IMG/VR virus record: IMGVR_UViG_3300037882_003354
Span: 248,001 to 312,000 of that record
Reading direction: 5' to 3' (one strand)
DNA length: 64,000 nt
In this document: positions 2-61,488 of the stretch, one piece after another
Position numbering within the stretch: position 1 is the first letter of the stretch
Layout: every line of letters begins with the position of its first letter
Notes under the pieces: model-generated
The model's database searches: none
What the model was told of the DNA's origin: nothing
Seen by the model: the letters and a program-made list of their open reading frames with translations, nothing else
Translations under genes and position numbers: made by a program

Positions 2-250
2 CGACACTATATATTTAAAGCAGTTCCGTATAATACATACTACGCAGGCGATTATGAAATAAATGGGAACGCAAATTATGCTCCCGTGTCCATGGTTACT
101 AGAAGTGATAGGGACGAATCATACATCATTAGTGCTAATAGAAGATCCCAGGATGCAGGTAATGCCAATGTTGGTCTAACTTCCCCAGCGGGCAGTGGAA
201 GTGAAACCCGCCCAAGAAACCTTGCACTATATGCAATTATCAAATATTAA
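2..250 (+). CDS. C-terminal part of a tail fibre / tail-collar protein (runs off the left edge)
   Basis: Open frame 2..250 ending ETRPRNLALYAIIKY*, the typical C-terminus of tail-collar/fibre proteins. Confidence 0.75.
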   Translation, partial: RHYIFKAVPYNTYYAGDYEINGNANYAPVSMVTRSDRDESYIISANRRSQDAGNANVGLTSPAGSGSETRPRNLALYAIIKY

Positions 251-44189: not shown

Positions 44190-47100
44190 TCAGGAGAACT
44201 TTTTCTTAAACTCTTCAAATTCTTTGCTGAGTTCCTTGATGGCCTCCACCAACAAAGGCACCACCTTCTCGTACTGAATGGTCCGGTAGTTCTCACCTGA
44301 CTTGCTGTCACCGTTTTCATCACTATCAAACGGAGCCAACTTGACTGCCTCCGGCAATACAGCTTCCAATTCGTCGGCAAATAATCCAACTATGGATTCA
44401 TCAGTGGAGAACCCCAGCTGTTCAGCCAATTGATTGGGAGTGTACCGGATGCCAGTCAGGGCCCTGACCTTGGTCACAGCATCAGTAATCACACAAACAT
44501 TGGTTTTCAATCTACGATCTGAAAAGAATGCTGTGATGTCACCCGTAGTTGTCAAAGCACCACTAAATTCATGACATTTTGCAACATACGGAATAGTACC
44601 TTCATCGATTGTGGCTGCGTTAGTTCCGACAAATCCAATGTAGCCCTGTCTTACTCCACCGCTGTGCGGGAAAAATTCAACATATCCAGACTTTGCACTA
44701 GTGCCAGTGCGTAGAGTTAAGAATCCGTTAGTTGTGCCAACCTGCGTGGTCAGCAATGTGGCATTTAGTGTGCCAGCAGTGCCAGACGCAGCAGCACCAA
44801 TTCCCACGCTGGTAAATTGCAGGCTGCTGGTGCTGTTGATGCACAATATGCCAGTGCTGTCCACCCGGATGCGCTCTGCAGTACCAGCGCCAATCAACAC
44901 AGTGCTTGACAATCCATTCGAACCAATTAATGCACCAATGACAGTGTTATTGATACCAGTGGTTATTGCACAACCAGCACAGTATCCAATGCCAATATTG
45001 CGGGATCCGATGGTATTACTCACGAGCGCATTCCATCCAACGGCAGTGTTGTCAACCCCACTGGTGTTGGCGTTCAAGGCACAGGCACCTATTGCTGTGT
45101 TTGTAATACCAGTGATGTTGCACTGGAGTGCATAACTACCCACTGCGGTGTTTAAGCCACCATTTGTGTTTCTAAAGAGCGTATCGTTGCCAACGGCTGT
45201 GTTGCATCCGCCACCGGTATTCTGCACAAGCGCACCAACTCCCAGGCCTGTATTGTAGCAGCCGACAATGTTGCATTTGAGTGTACCATACCCAATGGCC
45301 ACGTTATTAACACCGCCAGAGTTGCAGTAGAGTGCACCGACACCTTGTGCGGTGTTTCCACAGCCGTTAATGTTGAAGTATAGTGCACAAGCGCCAATAG
45401 CTGTATTGTTGTTGCCATATCCAGAGGGGCCAGGGCTGTTGTTGGAGAAAAGCGCATTATGACCCACGGCAGTGTTGTAGCTGTTTTCTATGGCGTTTGA
45501 TAGCGCACCAGTGCCCACAGCCAAGTTGCCCCAGCCGGTGGTGTTGGCAGCCATGGCAAGGGCACCTATGGCCACATTGCCGTCGGTAGTGTTTTGCCTA
45601 AGCGCAAAACAACCTATTGCGATATTACTGCAACCGATAATATTGTTAGAAAGTGCATTATATCCCACTGCAAAGTTGTTGTTGCCAATAGTATTTTTAC
45701 CCAGTGAACTGGTGCCCTGTGCAAAGTTATTGCAACCAGTGGTGTTGTTGACCAGTGCATGGCATCCAGCTGCAAAATTATAGCAACCAGTCTGTGTCTT
45801 GTTACCGGCACAGCAACCTATGCCCACGTTGCCCAGTCCAGTGGTGTAGCCGAACACTGATCCCAGGCTGGTGGGAGTGGCCAGGGTGCTGGCGGCACTA
45901 CTACCCACATATCCTGCCGCTGACGAACCAGTGTAACCTGTACTTCCGATGTATCCAGGATCACCCCTGGAGCCCACCCATCCCACCGATCCAGTGTATC
46001 CCTGACTGCCCACATAGCCACTACTGCCGGTGTAACCAATGCTGCCAGTGTATCCACGACTGCCAGTATATCCATTACTGCCGTTATAACCAACGTCACC
46101 CCGACTGCCGGTGTAACCCAGAACTCCCGATCCCGCATATCCAGTGGACGCTGATCCGGTGTAGCCAATGAGGCCACGACTGCCTGTGTATCCCAGCACA
46201 CCCGATCCCACATATCCCGTGGCAGCTGAGCCGGTGTAACCCACGCTGCCCTGGTATCCCACTCCTATGGAACCAGTGTATCCCAGTACAGCCGATCCCA
46301 CATATCCAGCACCGGCGGAGCCAGTATAACCCAGGCTACCACTATATCCAAATCCTGTGGAACCAGTGTAACCCAGACTGCCGGTGTATCCCTGTGTTCC
46401 TGAACCAGTGTAGCCAATGCCCTGCGAACCAGCATAACCCGCGCTGCCGCTGTATCCTATGCCCGACGAACCAGCATAACCGCGACTGCCAATGTAGCCA
46501 ATGCTGCCAGTGTAACCAATTGATCCAGTGAAGCCAACACCCTGTGAACCAGCGTATCCTGAACTGCCAGTGTAACCTTGAGCGCCCGATCCTGTGTAGC
46601 CAACACCTTGTGAACCAGTGTAACCCTGGCTACCAGTGTAACCTTGGGCGCCCGATCCTGTGTACCCAAGCAGACCGCGACTGCCCACGTAGCCCACGCT
46701 GCCGGTGTAGCCCAGCACACTGGAACCGGAATATCCAATGCCCTGTGAACCGGTATATCCTGAACTGCCAGTGTAACCCTGTGGGCCCTGTACATTGCTT
46801 GCCGAGCCGGTGTATCCTATGCTGCCCACGTACCCTCGGCTGCCCGAGTAACCAGATGGTCCCACAATTTTACCAACATCAGAAAATCCTGACACATTAC
46901 CCGGAGCAGTGGCATTGGAGTAGACCCATAAATTACCCGAATTCGCAGCAATATATCCATCGCCAATATTGATGGGACCAACGATGCTGGCGAACTGGCT
47001 GGTGGTGGCTTCAGTCACACTGCCCTTGATGTTGAGGCCAGAGCCCAGGGAACCAGTGTACCCAAAATCACCTCTAGAGCCACGACTGCCCACATATCCC

Positions 47101-50100
47101 GTGTCTCCCAGACTGCCAGTATAACCAATGGATCCAGTATAACCTCGACTGCCGGTGTATCCCAGACTGCCGTCGTATCCTCTGCTGCCGGTATAACCCA
47201 GGGACCCAGTGTATCCCTGTGGGCCTGACACTGTGCTGTTTGCACCTGAACTGCCAGCATACCCAATGCTGCCAACGTAACCAACTGATCCAGTATAGCC
47301 CAGGCTGCCGGTATAGCCCAGGCTACCGGCATATCCTGAATCTCCGCGACTGCCAGTATAACCAATGGATCCGGTATAACCAATGCTACCGGTGTATCCT
47401 TGACTGCCCACATACCCTCGACTGCCAGTGTATCCTTGACTGCCGGTATAACCAATTGACCCAGTGTAACCAGATGGTCCTACAATTACACCAACATCGA
47501 TAAATCCTGACACGTTACCTGGGGCACTGGAATTGGCATACACCCACAAGCGGCCAGTGTCTATTGCAATATATCCATCCCCCAGGGCAGGAGTACTTAT
47601 GCTTGAAAGGTCTGACGACGTGAGCACGCTGCCCTTGATGTTAAGTCCAGTGCCAGCACTTCCGGTGTATCCAATACTACCGGTGTATCCTTGACTGCCA
47701 GTGTATCCTTGACTGCCAGTATAGCCACGACTGCCAGTGTAGCCTATACTTCCAGTATACCCAATTGATCCTGTGTAACCAGTTGATCCCTGATATCCAT
47801 TAACGCCCTGTGATCCATCGTAACCAGCAGAACCAGTATAACCGCGGGATCCTGCATAGCCTGTGGATCCAACATAGCCAACAACGCCGGCGGTGTATGG
47901 TACTCCGTTGATGCACAGGCCGTTGGCATCCACCTTGATACGCTCGCAAGTGCCAGCACCTATTAACACTGTGCATACACAGCCTGCACCAGCCTGCAAC
48001 TGACCGATCACTGTGTTGCTGTGTCCAGTGGTTATGGCACATCCTGCACAAAACCCAATGCCAATGTTGTCGCTGGAAGTTGCACTGGCCAAGGAGTTGA
48101 CACCGATGGCAATATTGCAGTTGCCTGTACTGGAAACACCCAGACTGCCGAATCCCATGCTGATGTTGTCACAACCAGTGATGTTATAAATCAGCGCATT
48201 GCAACCCAGGGCAATATTGCTGTTGCCGAATTCGTTAAAAAATAATGAATTATATCCCATGGCAATATTATTATTGCCAGTGGTGTTACTGTTCAAGGAT
48301 TGGTAACCCACTGCAAAGTTATCACAGCCAGTGGTGTTGCCTTGAAGTGCGCTGCCCCCAACGGCCGTGTTGCGTGTGCCCAGCGTGTTTCCGTAGAGAG
48401 CTCTGTGTCCAATGGCTGTGTTATAACAACCATTGGTGTTGCTATAGAGTGCATATGCACCCTGAGCTGTGTTATTGCAACCAGTGGTATTGTTGTGAAG
48501 TGCACTGTAACCTTGTGCCACGTTATAACAACCGGTGGTATTGCTGAGGAGTGCACTACTGCCCTGAGCAGTATTATAACCACCAAGGGTGTTGTTTTGT
48601 AGTGAATTGGCACCCTGGGCTGTGTTGAAGCAGCCAGTGGTGTTAGTAATCAGTGCAGCAGCACCTTGAGCTGTATTGTAGCAGCCAGAGGTATTACTAT
48701 AGAGTACATTGTTACCCTGACCTGTGTTACCGCAGCCAGTGGTATTACTGTAAAGCGCAGAATAACCCTGGGCTGAGTTGTTACAACCGGTGGTATTACT
48801 ATAGAGTGCATTAAAACCCAGAGCTGTGTTGCTGCTGCCCAGTGTGCTGCTGCGTAGTGCTTGGTGTCCGATGGCCGTGTTGTTGATGCCAGAGGTGCTG
48901 GATTTTAATGCTTCTGATCCAATGGCTATATTATAGCCGCCCACAGTATTGGTCACCAGTGCACACAGACCAATGGCTATGTTGTCAGTTCCTGTCTGTG
49001 TGGTATTACCCGAGCAGTAGCCCACGCTGATGTTGCCCAGGTTTGACGTGGTATAAGCATACACTGTGCCCAGTGATGTTGGCGTTGCAGGGCTAGTACT
49101 ACCGGCACTGAATAATGCACCGTTTTGATAAAGGTTGCCATTAAAATGTATGTCACAGCCAACCCCCAGGCCACCCACAATGGTCACGGCACCAGTGATG
49201 GTGGAAATGGCATTGGCAGTAGACAGCACATTGACATTGGTGGCTGTGGCCGTGAATATGGGAGTACCCAGCGACCTTACAGCCAGGGTTCCTTCAGAGT
49301 TGATCAGGTCCACACTCTGGCTGGTGCTGTTTTGTATGCTGATGCCCGCAGTATTTGATCCCTTGTTCTTGAAAAGTGCACTGGCAGTAAAACTGGGGAA
49401 TGTCTGTGCGCTGTTGATTTCAAAGGTGGATTGATTGCCTGCATATACACCGCCACCCAGCCCCAGCCCGCCAACAACGATCACAGCACCAGTGGTTGTT
49501 GATGTGGCAATAGTGGAACTGGTGACTGCAATTTTGGGCATGGTCAGTATGCCACTGCTGGCCACGTAACTTAGGCCACTGTTGGCACCCAGGCTGAGAT
49601 AATCTCCCACAGCCGAAGCCATGGTGGGATAATATACTGTGGAACTGGTATTGGTTATATTATTGACAAAAATCCTGTCGGCCTGGCCGGAAGTAACTGA
49701 TCCAAAGATGCTGGAAGTACTAACCCAGGTGGCAGTGGTGCCCTGTGATTGCAACAAATAACCAGCTGTGCCTATGGGAATGAACGCAGTGGTGCTGTTT
49801 CCAGTCTGTATGGGTATGGAGCCAGTGGCGCCGCCCACCAGATTGACTGCAGAATTCACCTGCGCGGGTGCTGACCCGGTGTACCCAATGAGTCCGCGAC
49901 TGCCTGCATAACCAATGCTTCCAGTATAACCCTGAGAACCCACATAACCACGGCTGCCAGTGTACCCAATGCTGCCTGAGTAACCCAGGCCGCTTGAGCC
50001 GGTGTAGCCAGTGCTGCCCAGATATCCACGACTGCCAGTATAGCCTATGCTGCCGGTGTAGCCCAGACTGCCGGCACTGCCATTATATCCTGTGTCTCCT

Positions 50101-50309
50101 CGACTGCCTGTATACCCGATTAATCCTCGAGATCCAATGTATCCCCTGGGGCCCTGGGGGCCCTGGGCGCCTTCAGTGCCCAGTATTGCTGCGGCTCTCG
50201 CCACAGTCAGTGTCAATTCAGTGCCGCCCTCCGTGACAATAAACAGCGTTTCCCCAACAGTGGGGCTGGTCAGTGGTATTAGAGATTCGAGTTCTTGACG
50301 GATGGGCAT
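44190..50309 (-). CDS. Long tail fibre with collagen-like repeats, beta-roll repeats and C-terminal S74-type chaperone
   Basis: GYTGSx hexapeptide runs, NTAxGxxALxxNTTG 14-mers, SDRRLKTNV...YEKVVPLLVEAIKEL. Confidence 0.88.
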   Translation of the reverse strand: MPIRQELESLIPLTSPTVGETLFIVTEGGTELTLTVARAAAILGTEGAQGPQGPRGYIGSRGLIGYTGSRGDTGYNGSAGSLGYTGSIGYTGSRGYLGSTGYTGSSGLGYSGSIGYTGSRGYVGSQGYTGSIGYAGSRGLIGYTGSAPAQVNSAVNLVGGATGSIPIQTGNSTTAFIPIGTAGYLLQSQGTTATWVSTSSIFGSVTSGQADRIFVNNITNTSSTVYYPTMASAVGDYLSLGANSGLSYVASSGILTMPKIAVTSSTIATSTTTGAVIVVGGLGLGGGVYAGNQSTFEINSAQTFPSFTASALFKNKGSNTAGISIQNSTSQSVDLINSEGTLAVRSLGTPIFTATATNVNVLSTANAISTITGAVTIVGGLGVGCDIHFNGNLYQNGALFSAGSTSPATPTSLGTVYAYTTSNLGNISVGYCSGNTTQTGTDNIAIGLCALVTNTVGGYNIAIGSEALKSSTSGINNTAIGHQALRSSTLGSSNTALGFNALYSNTTGCNNSAQGYSALYSNTTGCGNTGQGNNVLYSNTSGCYNTAQGAAALITNTTGCFNTAQGANSLQNNTLGGYNTAQGSSALLSNTTGCYNVAQGYSALHNNTTGCNNTAQGAYALYSNTNGCYNTAIGHRALYGNTLGTRNTAVGGSALQGNTTGCDNFAVGYQSLNSNTTGNNNIAMGYNSLFFNEFGNSNIALGCNALIYNITGCDNISMGFGSLGVSSTGNCNIAIGVNSLASATSSDNIGIGFCAGCAITTGHSNTVIGQLQAGAGCVCTVLIGAGTCERIKVDANGLCINGVPYTAGVVGYVGSTGYAGSRGYTGSAGYDGSQGVNGYQGSTGYTGSIGYTGSIGYTGSRGYTGSQGYTGSQGYTGSIGYTGSAGTGLNIKGSVLTSSDLSSISTPALGDGYIAIDTGRLWVYANSSAPGNVSGFIDVGVIVGPSGYTGSIGYTGSQGYTGSRGYVGSQGYTGSIGYTGSIGYTGSRGDSGYAGSLGYTGSLGYTGSVGYVGSIGYAGSSGANSTVSGPQGYTGSLGYTGSRGYDGSLGYTGSRGYTGSIGYTGSLGDTGYVGSRGSRGDFGYTGSLGSGLNIKGSVTEATTSQFASIVGPINIGDGYIAANSGNLWVYSNATAPGNVSGFSDVGKIVGPSGYSGSRGYVGSIGYTGSASNVQGPQGYTGSSGYTGSQGIGYSGSSVLGYTGSVGYVGSRGLLGYTGSGAQGYTGSQGYTGSQGVGYTGSGAQGYTGSSGYAGSQGVGFTGSIGYTGSIGYIGSRGYAGSSGIGYSGSAGYAGSQGIGYTGSGTQGYTGSLGYTGSTGFGYSGSLGYTGSAGAGYVGSAVLGYTGSIGVGYQGSVGYTGSAATGYVGSGVLGYTGSRGLIGYTGSASTGYAGSGVLGYTGSRGDVGYNGSNGYTGSRGYTGSIGYTGSSGYVGSQGYTGSVGWVGSRGDPGYIGSTGYTGSSAAGYVGSSAASTLATPTSLGSVFGYTTGLGNVGIGCCAGNKTQTGCYNFAAGCHALVNNTTGCNNFAQGTSSLGKNTIGNNNFAVGYNALSNNIIGCSNIAIGCFALRQNTTDGNVAIGALAMAANTTGWGNLAVGTGALSNAIENSYNTAVGHNALFSNNSPGPSGYGNNNTAIGACALYFNINGCGNTAQGVGALYCNSGGVNNVAIGYGTLKCNIVGCYNTGLGVGALVQNTGGGCNTAVGNDTLFRNTNGGLNTAVGSYALQCNITGITNTAIGACALNANTSGVDNTAVGWNALVSNTIGSRNIGIGYCAGCAITTGINNTVIGALIGSNGLSSTVLIGAGTAERIRVDSTGILCINSTSSLQFTSVGIGAAASGTAGTLNATLLTTQVGTTNGFLTLRTGTSAKSGYVEFFPHSGGVRQGYIGFVGTNAATIDEGTIPYVAKCHEFSGALTTTGDITAFFSDRRLKTNVCVITDAVTKVRALTGIRYTPNQLAEQLGFSTDESIVGLFADELEAVLPEAVKLAPFDSDENGDSKSGENYRTIQYEKVVPLLVEAIKELSKEFEEFKKKFS
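45895..47890 (-). repeat. Main collagen-like coding repeat block (about 18-nt unit; boundaries approximate)
   Basis: Gly at every third residue, GYTGS(I/R/Q/L/A); a shorter block lies at about 49875..50171. Confidence 0.85.
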
Positions 50310-50418: not shown

Positions 50419-50447
50419 TTGACTGCACTGGAATTTCGCCGTATAAT
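50419..50447 (+). promoter_or_regulatory. sigma70-type promoter opening the + strand arm
   Basis: TTGACT-17 nt-TATAAT. Confidence 0.82.
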
Positions 50448-50487
50448 ATGCGTATCATACCAGGACAGCAGGGACAGAGTATTTTGC

Positions 50488-50564
50488 ACGGCCATACCGG
50501 AACGCTCTTCTAAAGCGTAGTACCGTAATTGGAGTCAATGTGGGTTCGAGTCCCGCTGGCCGTA
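50488..50564 (+). tRNA. tRNA-Arg(TCT)-like element lacking a D arm
   Basis: Acceptor ACGGCCA/TGGCCGT; anticodon arm ACGCT-CTTCTAA-AGCGT; T arm GTGGG-TTCGAGT-CCCGC; only 7 nt where the D arm should be. Confidence 0.65.
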
Positions 50565-50609
50565 CAAAATACTTTCGAACAGCTGAATCAACACAATAAC
50601 CAACAAATC

Positions 50610-54275: not shown

Positions 54276-54348
54276 TCTCCAGTAGCTCAGCGGTAGTAGC
54301 ATTTGACTGTTAATCAAAGGGTCCGTGGTTCGATCCCACGCTGGAGAG
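54276..54348 (+). tRNA. tRNA-Asn(GTT), CCA not encoded
   Basis: TCTCCAG/CTGGAGA; TTTGA-CTGTTAA-TCAAA; G73. Confidence 0.92.
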
Positions 54349-55373: not shown

Positions 55374-55484
55374 ACGGTTGTGAGTGGAATTGGCAGACCT
55401 CCAAAAGAATCGTTGTATGATTTGAGGGATGGGGCAGAGTTATAAACATCGCCTTTGTAGGTTCGAGACCTACCAACCGTACCA
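55374..55484 (+). ncRNA. 111-nt tRNA-like element with expanded anticodon/variable region
   Basis: ACGGTTG/CAACCGT-A-CCA; Leu-type D loop GGAATTGGCAGAC; T arm GTAGG-TTCGAGA-CCTAC. Confidence 0.7.
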
Positions 55485-59245: not shown

Positions 59246-59321
59246 GCGGCGTTAGCTCAGTTGGTAGAGCGCGATCCTTCCACGTTCGAGGTCATCGGTT
59301 CGAGCCCGATACGCCGCTCCA
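59246..59321 (+). tRNA. tRNA-Gly(TCC)
   Basis: GCGGCGT/ACGCCGC, U73, loop CTTCCAC, CCA. Confidence 0.88.
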
Positions 59322-60971: not shown

Positions 60972-61355
60972 ATGTCAGTTGTCCAATTTTTCAATAAAAG
61001 AAAACTATTAGCCATCTGCGGGTTATTGGTCTGCGGTGCAACTCATGCTCAATGGACACATGTCATGGACGATATATATCTTGACTTTCCAAAAATAAGG
61101 CAAATTAATAACAACACTTTCCAGGCTTGGATGCTTGCAAATACAAAAACTCCCGGTAGCTCGATGTTTTTAGCAGAATTTGACTGCCAAAAGAAACGTG
61201 TGAGCATGATACGAGTTGTAATTTTTGCTAAACCCATGGGAACGGGGGATGTGCTTCGTTCAGGAACATACTCTGATTGGGGCTCCATTATATCCGACAG
61301 CCCGCTGGATGCCGTGTCTACGGCACTTTGTCGTAAAACTAGAATAACTCATTGA
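60972..61355 (+). CDS. Probable exported protein
   Basis: Signal-like LLAICGLLVCGATHA, two Cys (EFDC...ALC); start re-picked. Confidence 0.6.
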   Translation: MSVVQFFNKRKLLAICGLLVCGATHAQWTHVMDDIYLDFPKIRQINNNTFQAWMLANTKTPGSSMFLAEFDCQKKRVSMIRVVIFAKPMGTGDVLRSGTYSDWGSIISDSPLDAVSTALCRKTRITH

Positions 61356-61380
61356 CAATATGACAGTAATACGTTATACT
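61352..61380 (+). promoter_or_regulatory. sigma70-type promoter
   Basis: TTGACA-17 nt-TATACT. Confidence 0.8.
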
Positions 61381-61411: not shown

Positions 61412-61488
61412 GGGACGGCAGCTTGAGCATGAGGAGCACGGGTCTCATAAACCCGAGGTAATGGGTGCGAATCCCATACGTCCTACCA
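61412..61488 (+). tRNA. tRNA-CAT (Ile2 or elongator Met), divergent D and T loops
   Basis: CGGGT-CTCATAA-ACCCG; T loop TGCGAAT; D loop lacks GG; CCA. Confidence 0.72.

Follow-up and report, generated by a model that had tools for sequence, protein, structure and literature searches.

The window analyzed in this study is a stretch of 64,000 nucleotides that corresponds to bases 248001-312000 of a 322,512-bp IMG/VR virus record (IMGVR_UViG_3300037882_003354). This record, which has direct terminal repeats and a G+C content of 47.9%, represents a jumbo phage that is seen again in freshwater and lake metagenomes from 13 studies. At positions 50488-50564 of the window (plus strand) lies a transfer RNA (tRNA)-like element of 77 nucleotides, to which CCA would be added, that carries perfect acceptor, anticodon (UCU) and T arms and lacks a D hairpin. 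The linker between its acceptor and anticodon stems is only 7 nucleotides long (TACCGGA, 50495-50501), as it is in all members of the family described below. A sequence-only reading of the same DNA had already reported the perfect acceptor and anticodon arms, the canonical T arm, this short linker, a 21-nucleotide ‘variable region’ and the trinucleotide CAA in place of CCA, and each of these features can be read directly in the sequence.

The Rfam tRNA model (RF00005) scores the element at 40.6 bits against a gathering threshold of 29; the D-loop is missing from its alignment and just 2+2 nucleotides are left of the D arm. ARAGORN makes no call on the element. If a D arm is defined as a hairpin between positions 9 and 26, the element has none. 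Attempts by hand to recover a canonical cloverleaf by means of an intron, a permutation or another pairing register also failed to restore the D hairpin. A minus-strand Rfam match to ‘Plastid-ycf2’ (32 bits, gathering threshold 65.7) only mirrors the tRNA, and the other Rfam matches are all weak, with a Tymo_tRNA-like match lying elsewhere in the window. RNAfold additionally draws an ATTG/CAAT mini-hairpin in the ‘variable’ region. This hairpin is not conserved, and in many family members the segment is too short to form one; the region was therefore treated as a loop.

Relatives of the element were collected by pattern scans of IMG/VR, which yielded 45 and later 69 distinct Arg(UCU) sequences, the latter making up alignment A2. 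The architecture is represented by at least ~137 distinct sequences from approximately 150 viral contigs, from several cultured phages and from a small number of metagenome-assembled genomes (MAGs). Most members were gathered by patterns that fix parts of the core, and the family counts are samples to be read as minima. In A2, 99.3% of the cells assigned to pairs hold standard pairs, versus ~40% when the partners are slid, and double-sided changes are present in 7 of 7 acceptor pairs, 5 of 5 anticodon-stem pairs and 4 of 5 T-stem pairs (16 of 17). This covariation establishes the secondary structure. It also upholds the earlier argument that intact arms speak against random decay, as evident by compensatory changes across ~137 sequences that are the mark of selection. 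A covariance model (R1) used to search the source-phage genome finds exactly one copy, at 91.4 bits, with ordinary tRNAs scoring at most 33 bits.

The structure contains a long-range helix. RNAfold pairs positions 11-13 with positions 36-38 (CGG/CCG) to form 3 bp around the anticodon arm. The first patterns used in our scans fixed the letters of both strands, and a later scan left 36-38 free. The strand combinations recovered by this later scan are CGG/CCG, CAC/GTG, CAG/CTG and CTC/GAG, which are complementary every time, and wider sets add ACC/GGT, GCC/GGC, CGA/TCG, CCC/GGG and others. In A2 the helix is 100% paired: pair 12:37 is GC in 55 sequences, AU in 11 and UA in 3, pair 13:36 is GC in 60 and CG in 9, and one-sided changes are absent from both. 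In the most diverse set, whose alignment was fitted to the model, the two outer helix pairs are formed in 42 of 42 sequences with four Watson-Crick types each.

Given this helix, the 21-nucleotide ‘variable region’ (50519-50539) has the length originally stated and is not a single loop. It is composed of a 4-nucleotide bulge, a 3-nucleotide helix strand and a 14-nucleotide D-loop-like segment. Throughout the family this last segment measures 12-14 nucleotides, begins with U-A-R, carries GG-A and ends with A-Y abutting the T stem, and GGA is present in 131 of 132 sequences. At locus L099, a canonical tRNA-Arg(TCT) gene lies 8 nucleotides from a rewired copy, and its D-loop has the same words (GTAATTGGAT). 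Alignment columns 41 and 52 (R...Y, similar to the 15:48 pair of canonical tRNAs) are AU in 67 and GC in 2 of the A2 sequences, switching together. This column pair, T8, the A at column 40 and the GG are conserved candidate equivalents of elements of the elbow (G18 G19 with pseudouridine-55 and C56) and of the core (U8:A14 and R15:Y48).

We infer from these data that the D stem is replaced by the 3-bp helix flanking the anticodon arm, that the D-loop has moved to the T-arm junction, and that the 22-26 and 44-47 regions have been lost. The earlier label ‘D-armless’ is thus correct in that there is no D hairpin and incomplete in that the covarying 11-13/36-38 helix and a relocated D-loop-like segment, with GG and a putative A20, stand in for the D arm. 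Because positions 11-13 pair 3′ of the anticodon arm, that arm becomes the tip of one long arm, which would consist of 5 bp, a 1-by-4 internal loop, 3 bp and possibly a Y10/U39 contact. The number of layers in such an arm is close to that of an anticodon stem stacked on a D stem, such that the spacing of anticodon and CCA could be preserved. The individual features are collected in Table 1.

Table 1. Features of the rewired tRNA gene and its flanks (window coordinates).
Feature	Position	Strand	Basis or remark
Promoter TTGACT-17-TATAAT	50419-50447	+	11/12 sigma-70-type match
Probable transcription start	~50454-50456	+	from promoter position
Leader strand (5′) of 12-bp leader-trailer duplex, extending the acceptor stem	50475-50486	+	folding
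C opposite the discriminator	50487	+	
Acceptor stem, 5′ strand ACGGCCA	50488-50494	+	all 7 pairs covary in the family
Connector U8-A9-Y10 (TAC)	50495-50497	+	T8 and A9 invariant in 69 sequences
Long-range 3-bp helix (standing in for D stem), 5′ strand CGG	50498-50500	+	pairs with 50523-50525
Lone unpaired A at boundary of long-range helix and anticodon stem	50501	+	
Anticodon arm: stem ACGCT (50502-50506) / AGCGT (50514-50518), loop CTTCTAA	50502-50518	+	5 pairs covary
Anticodon TCT	50509-50511	+	reads AGA
4-nucleotide bulge AGTA, 3′ side of extended anticodon arm	50519-50522	+	A32, G33 and A35 invariant in 69 sequences
Long-range helix, 3′ strand CCG	50523-50525	+	pairs with 50498-50500
D-loop-like segment TAATTGGAGTCAAT, 14 nucleotides, abutting T stem	50526-50539	+	D-loop words, GG-A
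Proposed equivalents of A14, R15, G18 G19, A20 and Y48	50527, 50528, 50531-50532, 50533 and 50539	+	
T arm: stem GTGGG (50540-50544) / CCCGC (50552-50556), loop TTCGAGT	50540-50556	+	4/5 pairs covary
Acceptor stem, 3′ strand TGGCCGT (50557-50563), and discriminator A (50564)	50557-50564	+	
Trailer strand (3′) of leader-trailer duplex	50565-50576	+	starts with CAA; no CCA encoded

The segment next to the T stem follows the amino acid identity of the tRNA at one position, the letter after GG. Bacterial Arg identity is carried by A20, C35, U/G36 and A/G73, and bacterial Ile identity includes G16, U20, U21 and A73 (PMC9976931). With the anticodon loop left free and an Arg-type core fixed, all true members read TCT, and the covariance model then found extra copies with CCT and ACG at the same loci. 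Two scans specified only the D-loop-like words beside a TTCGAAT T loop, again with the anticodon free, and a structural matcher gave 137 distinct sequences. Among the matches listed, GG followed by A is found with Arg anticodons only (TCT 88, ACG 19, TCG 10, CCT 7), and GG followed by another letter with Ile-type anticodons only (TAT 6, GAT 5, CAT 2). The letter after GG is A in 121 of the 124 Arg-anticodon members listed (the other three read GGGA) and T in 13 of the 13 Ile-type members listed, all of which have discriminator A. Discriminators among the 124 Arg members listed are A in 52, G in 47 and T in 25.

This link between position 20 and the anticodon matches the Arg and Ile identity sets, which argues that the segment is read as a D-loop by the aminoacyl-tRNA synthetases. 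With its A after GG, its TCT anticodon and its discriminator A, the window element carries the complete set for arginyl-tRNA synthetase (ArgRS), provided that the A at 50533 is equivalent to A20, as we consider probable. The idea of an ‘Arg-only’ class was dropped when the scan for members without A20 found the Ile-type genes, and the architecture is thus not confined to arginine. These Ile-type rewired genes are located at L289, L294, L323, L339, L341, L345, L360, L373, L381, L387 and L396, where GGT replaces GGA, the discriminator is A and CCA is not encoded.

The sequence-only reading had held that close relatives with a normal D arm, together with a copy unique to this DNA, would indicate a pseudogene or an assembly error. 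The relatives lack the D arm and the copy is not unique. The identical rewired-tRNA sequence occurs in contigs of independent freshwater metagenome studies, and a blastn search of phage records showed that Limnohabitans phage DC31 and Agrobacterium phage Atu_ph04 share its core; their copies have different yet fully complementary acceptor and anticodon stems and encode CCA. Additional cultured carriers, in which the site is unannotated, are Pseudomonas phages PAK_P2, JG003, phiPsa397 and five vB_PpuM phages, as well as Stenotrophomonas phage SOVA965. Two Alishewanella phages carry a member annotated as ‘tRNA-Ser’. Judged by its sequence, then, the element is a real, conserved tRNA-Arg(UCU) gene, neither decay nor artefact. 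It is part of a large class, apparently undescribed so far, of phage tRNAs and a few bacterial ones.

Several members of the family have individual peculiarities. One of the two Alishewanella copies (vB_AspM_Slicko01, OQ508956.1 17417-17495, equal to L135 1485-1563) is divergent, scores 62.9 bits and has a TCT anticodon despite its GenBank label ‘tRNA-Ser’; its internal loop is mostly paired, giving one long, near-continuous arm. Rewired Arg(ACG) genes at L122 (2948-3039) and L104 (5134-5229) have an extra 12-30 nucleotides, partly hairpin-forming, inside the D-loop-like segment, and would be rewired tRNAs with a true extra arm. HNH (homing) endonuclease genes adjoin the rewired tRNA in three unrelated cultured phages, namely DC31 (L001), PAK_P2 (L134) and SOVA965 (L136), and could provide a route for its horizontal spread.

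The genomic context of the family is as would be expected of functional tRNA genes. Another tRNA lies within 1 kb at 59 of 93 loci, often only 5-16 nucleotides away, and ARAGORN calls none of the 93 rewired genes. In arrays of 12-26 tRNAs, Arg(acg) or Arg(tcg) is present and canonical Arg(tct) is absent, and the rewired gene fills the Arg(UCU) slot. Both forms occur together at only four loci (L088, L099/L102, L115). CCA is encoded in 94 of 132 sequences (71%) and absent in the remaining 29%. Another recurrent tRNA-like element that is not called by ARAGORN is present at other IMG/VR loci (L170, L178, L182, L185, L191, L193, L199 and L204). It combines a hairpin (GATCCTG..AAGGATAC), ACAG.CAGCA, an anticodon-arm-like TTCCA-loop-GGA, a canonical T arm and a terminal ACCA, and may be a further non-canonical class of phage tRNA.

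Among 185,579 species genomes, ~10 contigs carry the Arg(UCU) form, all of them from MAGs, versus well over 100 viral contigs. Two of these belong to Actinomycetota MAGs; the gene lies on contigs of 1.28 Mb and 331 kb there, and the two copies score 33.7 and 38.5 bits with the Rfam tRNA model. In one of the MAGs, G001, ARAGORN types 43 of 45 tRNA hits; these are single-copy and comprise Arg acg, ccg and cct, among others, and no canonical tct. Its rewired gene, at 92 bits, is the sole UCU candidate in that MAG. The neighboring genes have a housekeeping character (ECF transporter, rhodanese, DUF2017, RNase T-like exonuclease and tRNA-His), and the flanks on both sides are syntenic with a second species at ~84% identity. 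The rewired gene is absent from 59 other relatives that were examined. In any such organism that uses AGA at all, the rewired RNA would be needed to decode it.

In the source phage, the RNA gene is the first element behind the putative promoter at 50419-50447. The phage genome contains 60 sites that match the consensus at 11 or more of 12 positions, compared to ~6.3 in shuffled sequences (about ten-fold), and five of these, this one included, are located just upstream of tRNA or tRNA-like genes. Because of this enrichment and of the recurrence upstream of tRNAs, the promoter is very probably real, as the sequence-only reading had supposed. Approximately 30 of the 60 sites (TTGACA-16..18-TATAAT) are concentrated in 16 kb outside the window (genome ~119,000-135,500), on the plus strand and every 250-700 bp, an arrangement suggestive of an early region in which host RNA polymerase reads numerous short transcription units. 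A 346-nucleotide metatranscriptome contig covers 50473-50818 and starts 26 nucleotides after the -10 hexamer, which fits weakly with transcription from the 50419-50447 promoter without proving it. No terminator-like site was found between the RNA gene and the open reading frames (ORFs) that follow from 50610. These ORFs encode three proteins of ~260-290 amino acids (one with a weak glycosyltransferase match), a 192-amino-acid protein and an S-adenosylmethionine (SAM) methyltransferase, after which a tRNA array begins at 54276.

The absence of an encoded CCA is best considered together with the fold of the presumptive precursor. Folding of the region 50455-50600 gives -44.3 kcal/mol (z = -3.4) and a structure in which a 12-bp leader-trailer duplex stacks beneath the acceptor stem, and a relative (L064/L089) has the same layout with compensatory changes (GTACTTTGC / GCAAAGTAC). 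Among the other tRNA hits of the phage genome, 10 of 12 encode CCA. The CAA noted in the sequence-only reading is therefore not a defect: it lies within the duplex, which argues for a processing design and not for a damaged CCA, and other family members also frequently lack an encoded CCA. Leader-trailer pairing is also seen for tRNA-Asn (54276-54348; ~8 bp, CCA not encoded) and tRNA-Gly (59246-59318; 11 bp, its CCA included), and the three genes suggest a precursor-processing design shared within the phage.

In the source phage, the 11 ARAGORN-callable tRNAs mostly serve A-ending codons and include none for Arg, and AGA makes up 19% of the Arg codons (8.1 per 1000). Its 322-kb genome encodes no ArgRS (PF00750), CCA-adding enzyme (PF01743) or Rnl2-type RNA ligase (PF09414). 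Host enzymes would therefore be expected to finish and charge the tRNA.

We consider it probable, at roughly 78%, that the element at 50488-50564 is a functional AGA-decoding tRNA-Arg(UCU) with a conserved non-canonical core, used by a 322-kb freshwater jumbo phage. The ‘unusual functional adaptor’ that the sequence-only reading had named among its options is the one that the sequence evidence favors. Transcription from the consensus host-type promoter would yield a transcript that starts with the RNA and runs into the ORFs, and the precursor of the RNA would fold into the leader-trailer duplex. Host enzymes would presumably trim it and add CCA, host ArgRS would charge it by means of A20, C35, U36 and A73, and the product would decode AGA in a phage with no Arg tRNA gene besides this one. 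The landmarks of the D-loop (A14, R15, G18 G19, position 20, A21 and Y48) could form the usual elbow with the T loop and display A20 to ArgRS.

A broader proposal, for which we see the odds as evenly poised, is that the family constitutes a second, hitherto unrecognized tRNA architecture in bacteria and above all in phages. It would encompass Arg (UCU, CCU, ACG, UCG) and Ile-type (UAU, GAU, CAU) tRNAs that are charged by ordinary ArgRS and isoleucyl-tRNA synthetase (IleRS) and work on ordinary ribosomes, and it would have replaced canonical tRNA-Arg(UCU) in at least one actinobacterial lineage. Its near-restriction to phages would then indicate that it was selected for some advantage, for example evasion of tRNA-targeting defence or of an attack by the phage itself on the tRNAs of its host.

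Several observations weigh against these interpretations. The tRNA folded alone by RNAfold is not unusually stable (z = -1.39), and one subclass has mismatches, or pairing in another register, at the third helix pair and at the first pair of the anticodon stem. The covariation that favors the 15:48-like pair amounts to two GC cases. Because our patterns fixed letters of the core, the conservation of those letters arises partly by construction. The proposed three-dimensional mimicry of the tRNA core is a product of reasoning, not of computation. The RNA-library contig (Logan) displays neither ends nor strand and could be DNA carry-over. Finally, AGA may be very rare in G001, such that its status as a genome with a ‘sole tRNA-Arg(UCU)’ is suggestive and not proof.

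The sequence-only reading had also offered a decoy for anticodon nucleases or uncharged-tRNA sensors, for which we found nothing specific. In its general form, this explanation holds that a tRNA-shaped RNA, produced early by a strong promoter, soaks up or evades tRNA-targeting immunity or sensors, with translation secondary or absent. tRNA-cleaving defences and phage tRNAs that evade them are reported for PARIS/AriB (PMC11464382, PMC12409363), retron effectors (PMC11555353) and bacterial Schlafen nucleases (PMC13056530), and both the near-confinement of the family to phages and the consensus promoter upstream would suit such a role. However, a decoy would need neither a perfect 7-bp acceptor stem, nor an encoded CCA in most members, nor a discriminator and a position 20 that obey the identity rules. 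It would also not be expected to fill the Arg(UCU) slot of tRNA arrays or to be the sole tRNA-Arg(UCU) in a cellular genome, and no nuclease that strikes Arg or Ile tRNAs via the D arm was identified in this analysis. We therefore regard the decoy as improbable. A milder version, in which the RNA decodes and its rewired core was selected to escape nucleases that need a normal D arm, is compatible with a functional tRNA-Arg(UCU).

Another explanation, which we judge slightly less likely still, views the tRNA-like fold as a processing mark placed ahead of the ORFs from 50610. In this case the fold would recruit RNase P, RNase Z or RNase III to cut and stabilize the mRNA, and the tRNA-like product would be a by-product. 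The position of the element at the head of a transcript that reads into ORFs without an intervening terminator, the 12-bp leader-trailer duplex, the RNA-library contig spanning the tRNA and the ORF start, and the leader-trailer pairing of two other phage tRNAs are all as this explanation would have it. However, in most other phages the element resides inside tRNA arrays and not ahead of ORFs, and a strict anticodon loop, anticodons restricted to Arg and A20 would be needless for a processing mark.

A decaying pseudogene, an assembly error or an integration-site (att) tRNA fragment could account for the blindness of ARAGORN and the missing CCA, and integration-site tRNA fragments are common (PMC9897764), but this is very improbable given compensatory changes in every helix among ~137 distinct sequences, the same sequence in independent freshwater metagenome contigs, the presence of both acceptor halves, neighbors (a tail-fibre gene with small ORFs, or tRNA arrays) that differ from the integrase or prophage border expected beside an att fragment, the occurrence in virulent phages (PAK_P2) and inside tRNA arrays, and the synteny on both sides of the MAG locus.

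A close comparison for a functional rewired tRNA-Arg(UCU) is its canonical bacterial and phage counterpart (RF00005; copies at L088, L099 and L115). Both share a 7-bp acceptor stem, a 5-bp T stem with a TTCGA loop, a 5-bp anticodon stem with the loop CUUCUAA, discriminator A or G, a usually encoded CCA, a size of ~77 nucleotides, the D-loop words UAAUUGGAU with A20, and a location in phage arrays. In contrast to the canonical form, the rewired form is without the D hairpin, position 26 and the 44-47 region, the partner of 11-13 comes after the anticodon arm, and the D-loop separates that strand from the T stem, which gives the elements a different order along the chain.

For mammalian mitochondrial tRNA-Ser(AGY), an extended form of the anticodon arm has been suggested. 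Like the RNAs described here, D-armless tRNAs of metazoan mitochondria (mammalian tRNA-Ser(AGY), nematode tRNA-Ser) have no D hairpin and a short connector between acceptor and anticodon stems (reviewed in PMC4013460 and PMC7609411). The class is otherwise unlike these tRNAs, to which the sequence-only reading had referred. Mitochondrial D-armless tRNAs are ~55-65 nucleotides long and AT-rich, have no GG/T-loop elbow and have co-evolved partners, whereas the window element and its class are full length and keep a canonical T loop and a GG segment. In phages and bacteria, where it occurs, this class would depend not on dedicated organellar partners but on the ArgRS, EF-Tu, RNase P and ribosomes of ordinary bacteria.

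Permuted and split tRNA genes, as in Cyanidioschyzon merolae and Nanoarchaeum, have a changed order of elements, and their processing restores a canonical mature tRNA. In contrast, the mature rewired RNA would itself be non-canonical. Both acceptor strands lie at the ends of the gene, and thus no circular permutation or trans-splicing restores the canonical order. Transfer-messenger RNA (tmRNA), YrlA and the 3′ tRNA-like structures of plant viruses share acceptor/T-arm mimicry with the rewired element; however, they have no functional anticodon arm or are embedded within larger RNAs, whereas the rewired element has a perfect anticodon stem-loop and the size of a tRNA. Allo-tRNAs and the (8/4) and (9/3) tRNAs (PMC5389517) are also non-canonical, found in metagenomes and phage clusters, and missed or mis-typed by standard finders. 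They have an altered acceptor/T split and long variable arms and keep the D arm, whereas the rewired class has a 7/5 split and a rebuilt D arm. A 2020 review of natural non-canonical tRNAs mentions neither phages nor a bacterial tRNA without a D hairpin (PMC7609411). A 2023 catalogue of structured-RNA candidates from IMG/VR (PMC10690425) may contain the class unnoticed. The literature searched, of partial coverage, holds no description of the class, and this absence is not proof of novelty.

The window holds three further features that deserve mention. A weak tRNA hit at 61413-61484 (plus strand; 29.3 bits, just over the gathering threshold) has a CAU anticodon and an imperfect acceptor stem, is uncalled by ARAGORN and lies 33 nucleotides behind an 11/12 promoter-like site (61352-61380); it may be another non-standard tRNA of the source phage. 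A sequence just after tRNA-Cys (55409-55484, plus strand) scores 20.5 bits with the rewired model, has no Rfam hit at E <= 1, and is probably a chance match or a degenerate tRNA remnant. Divergent from the tRNA promoter region, a 2039-amino-acid ORF (44190-50309, minus strand) encodes seven collagen triple-helix stretches and a C-terminal Peptidase_S74 domain (intramolecular chaperone). Among PHROG families it matches tail fibre and tail spike proteins best, and its product is a giant collagen-like fibre.

To our knowledge, a D hairpin is regarded as a universal part of the cloverleaf in cytosolic, bacterial and phage tRNAs, and the known exceptions are organellar. If our interpretation is correct, the rewired class, full length and with elbow and identity nucleotides retained around a core of altered chain topology, would show how much of the tRNA core is needed by bacterial RNase P, CCA-adding enzyme, ArgRS and IleRS, EF-Tu, modification enzymes and the ribosome. 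It would also explain the ‘missing’ tRNA-Arg(UCU) of phage arrays and of some MAGs, given that ARAGORN misses the class, and would supply a natural scaffold for the engineering of orthogonal tRNAs. Cultured carriers exist (PAK_P2-like Pseudomonas phages, Atu_ph04, SOVA965 and DC31), and these questions are therefore directly testable. Moreover, the class would offer a concrete test of whether phage tRNAs escape tRNA-targeting immunity by structural means that go beyond the anticodon loop.

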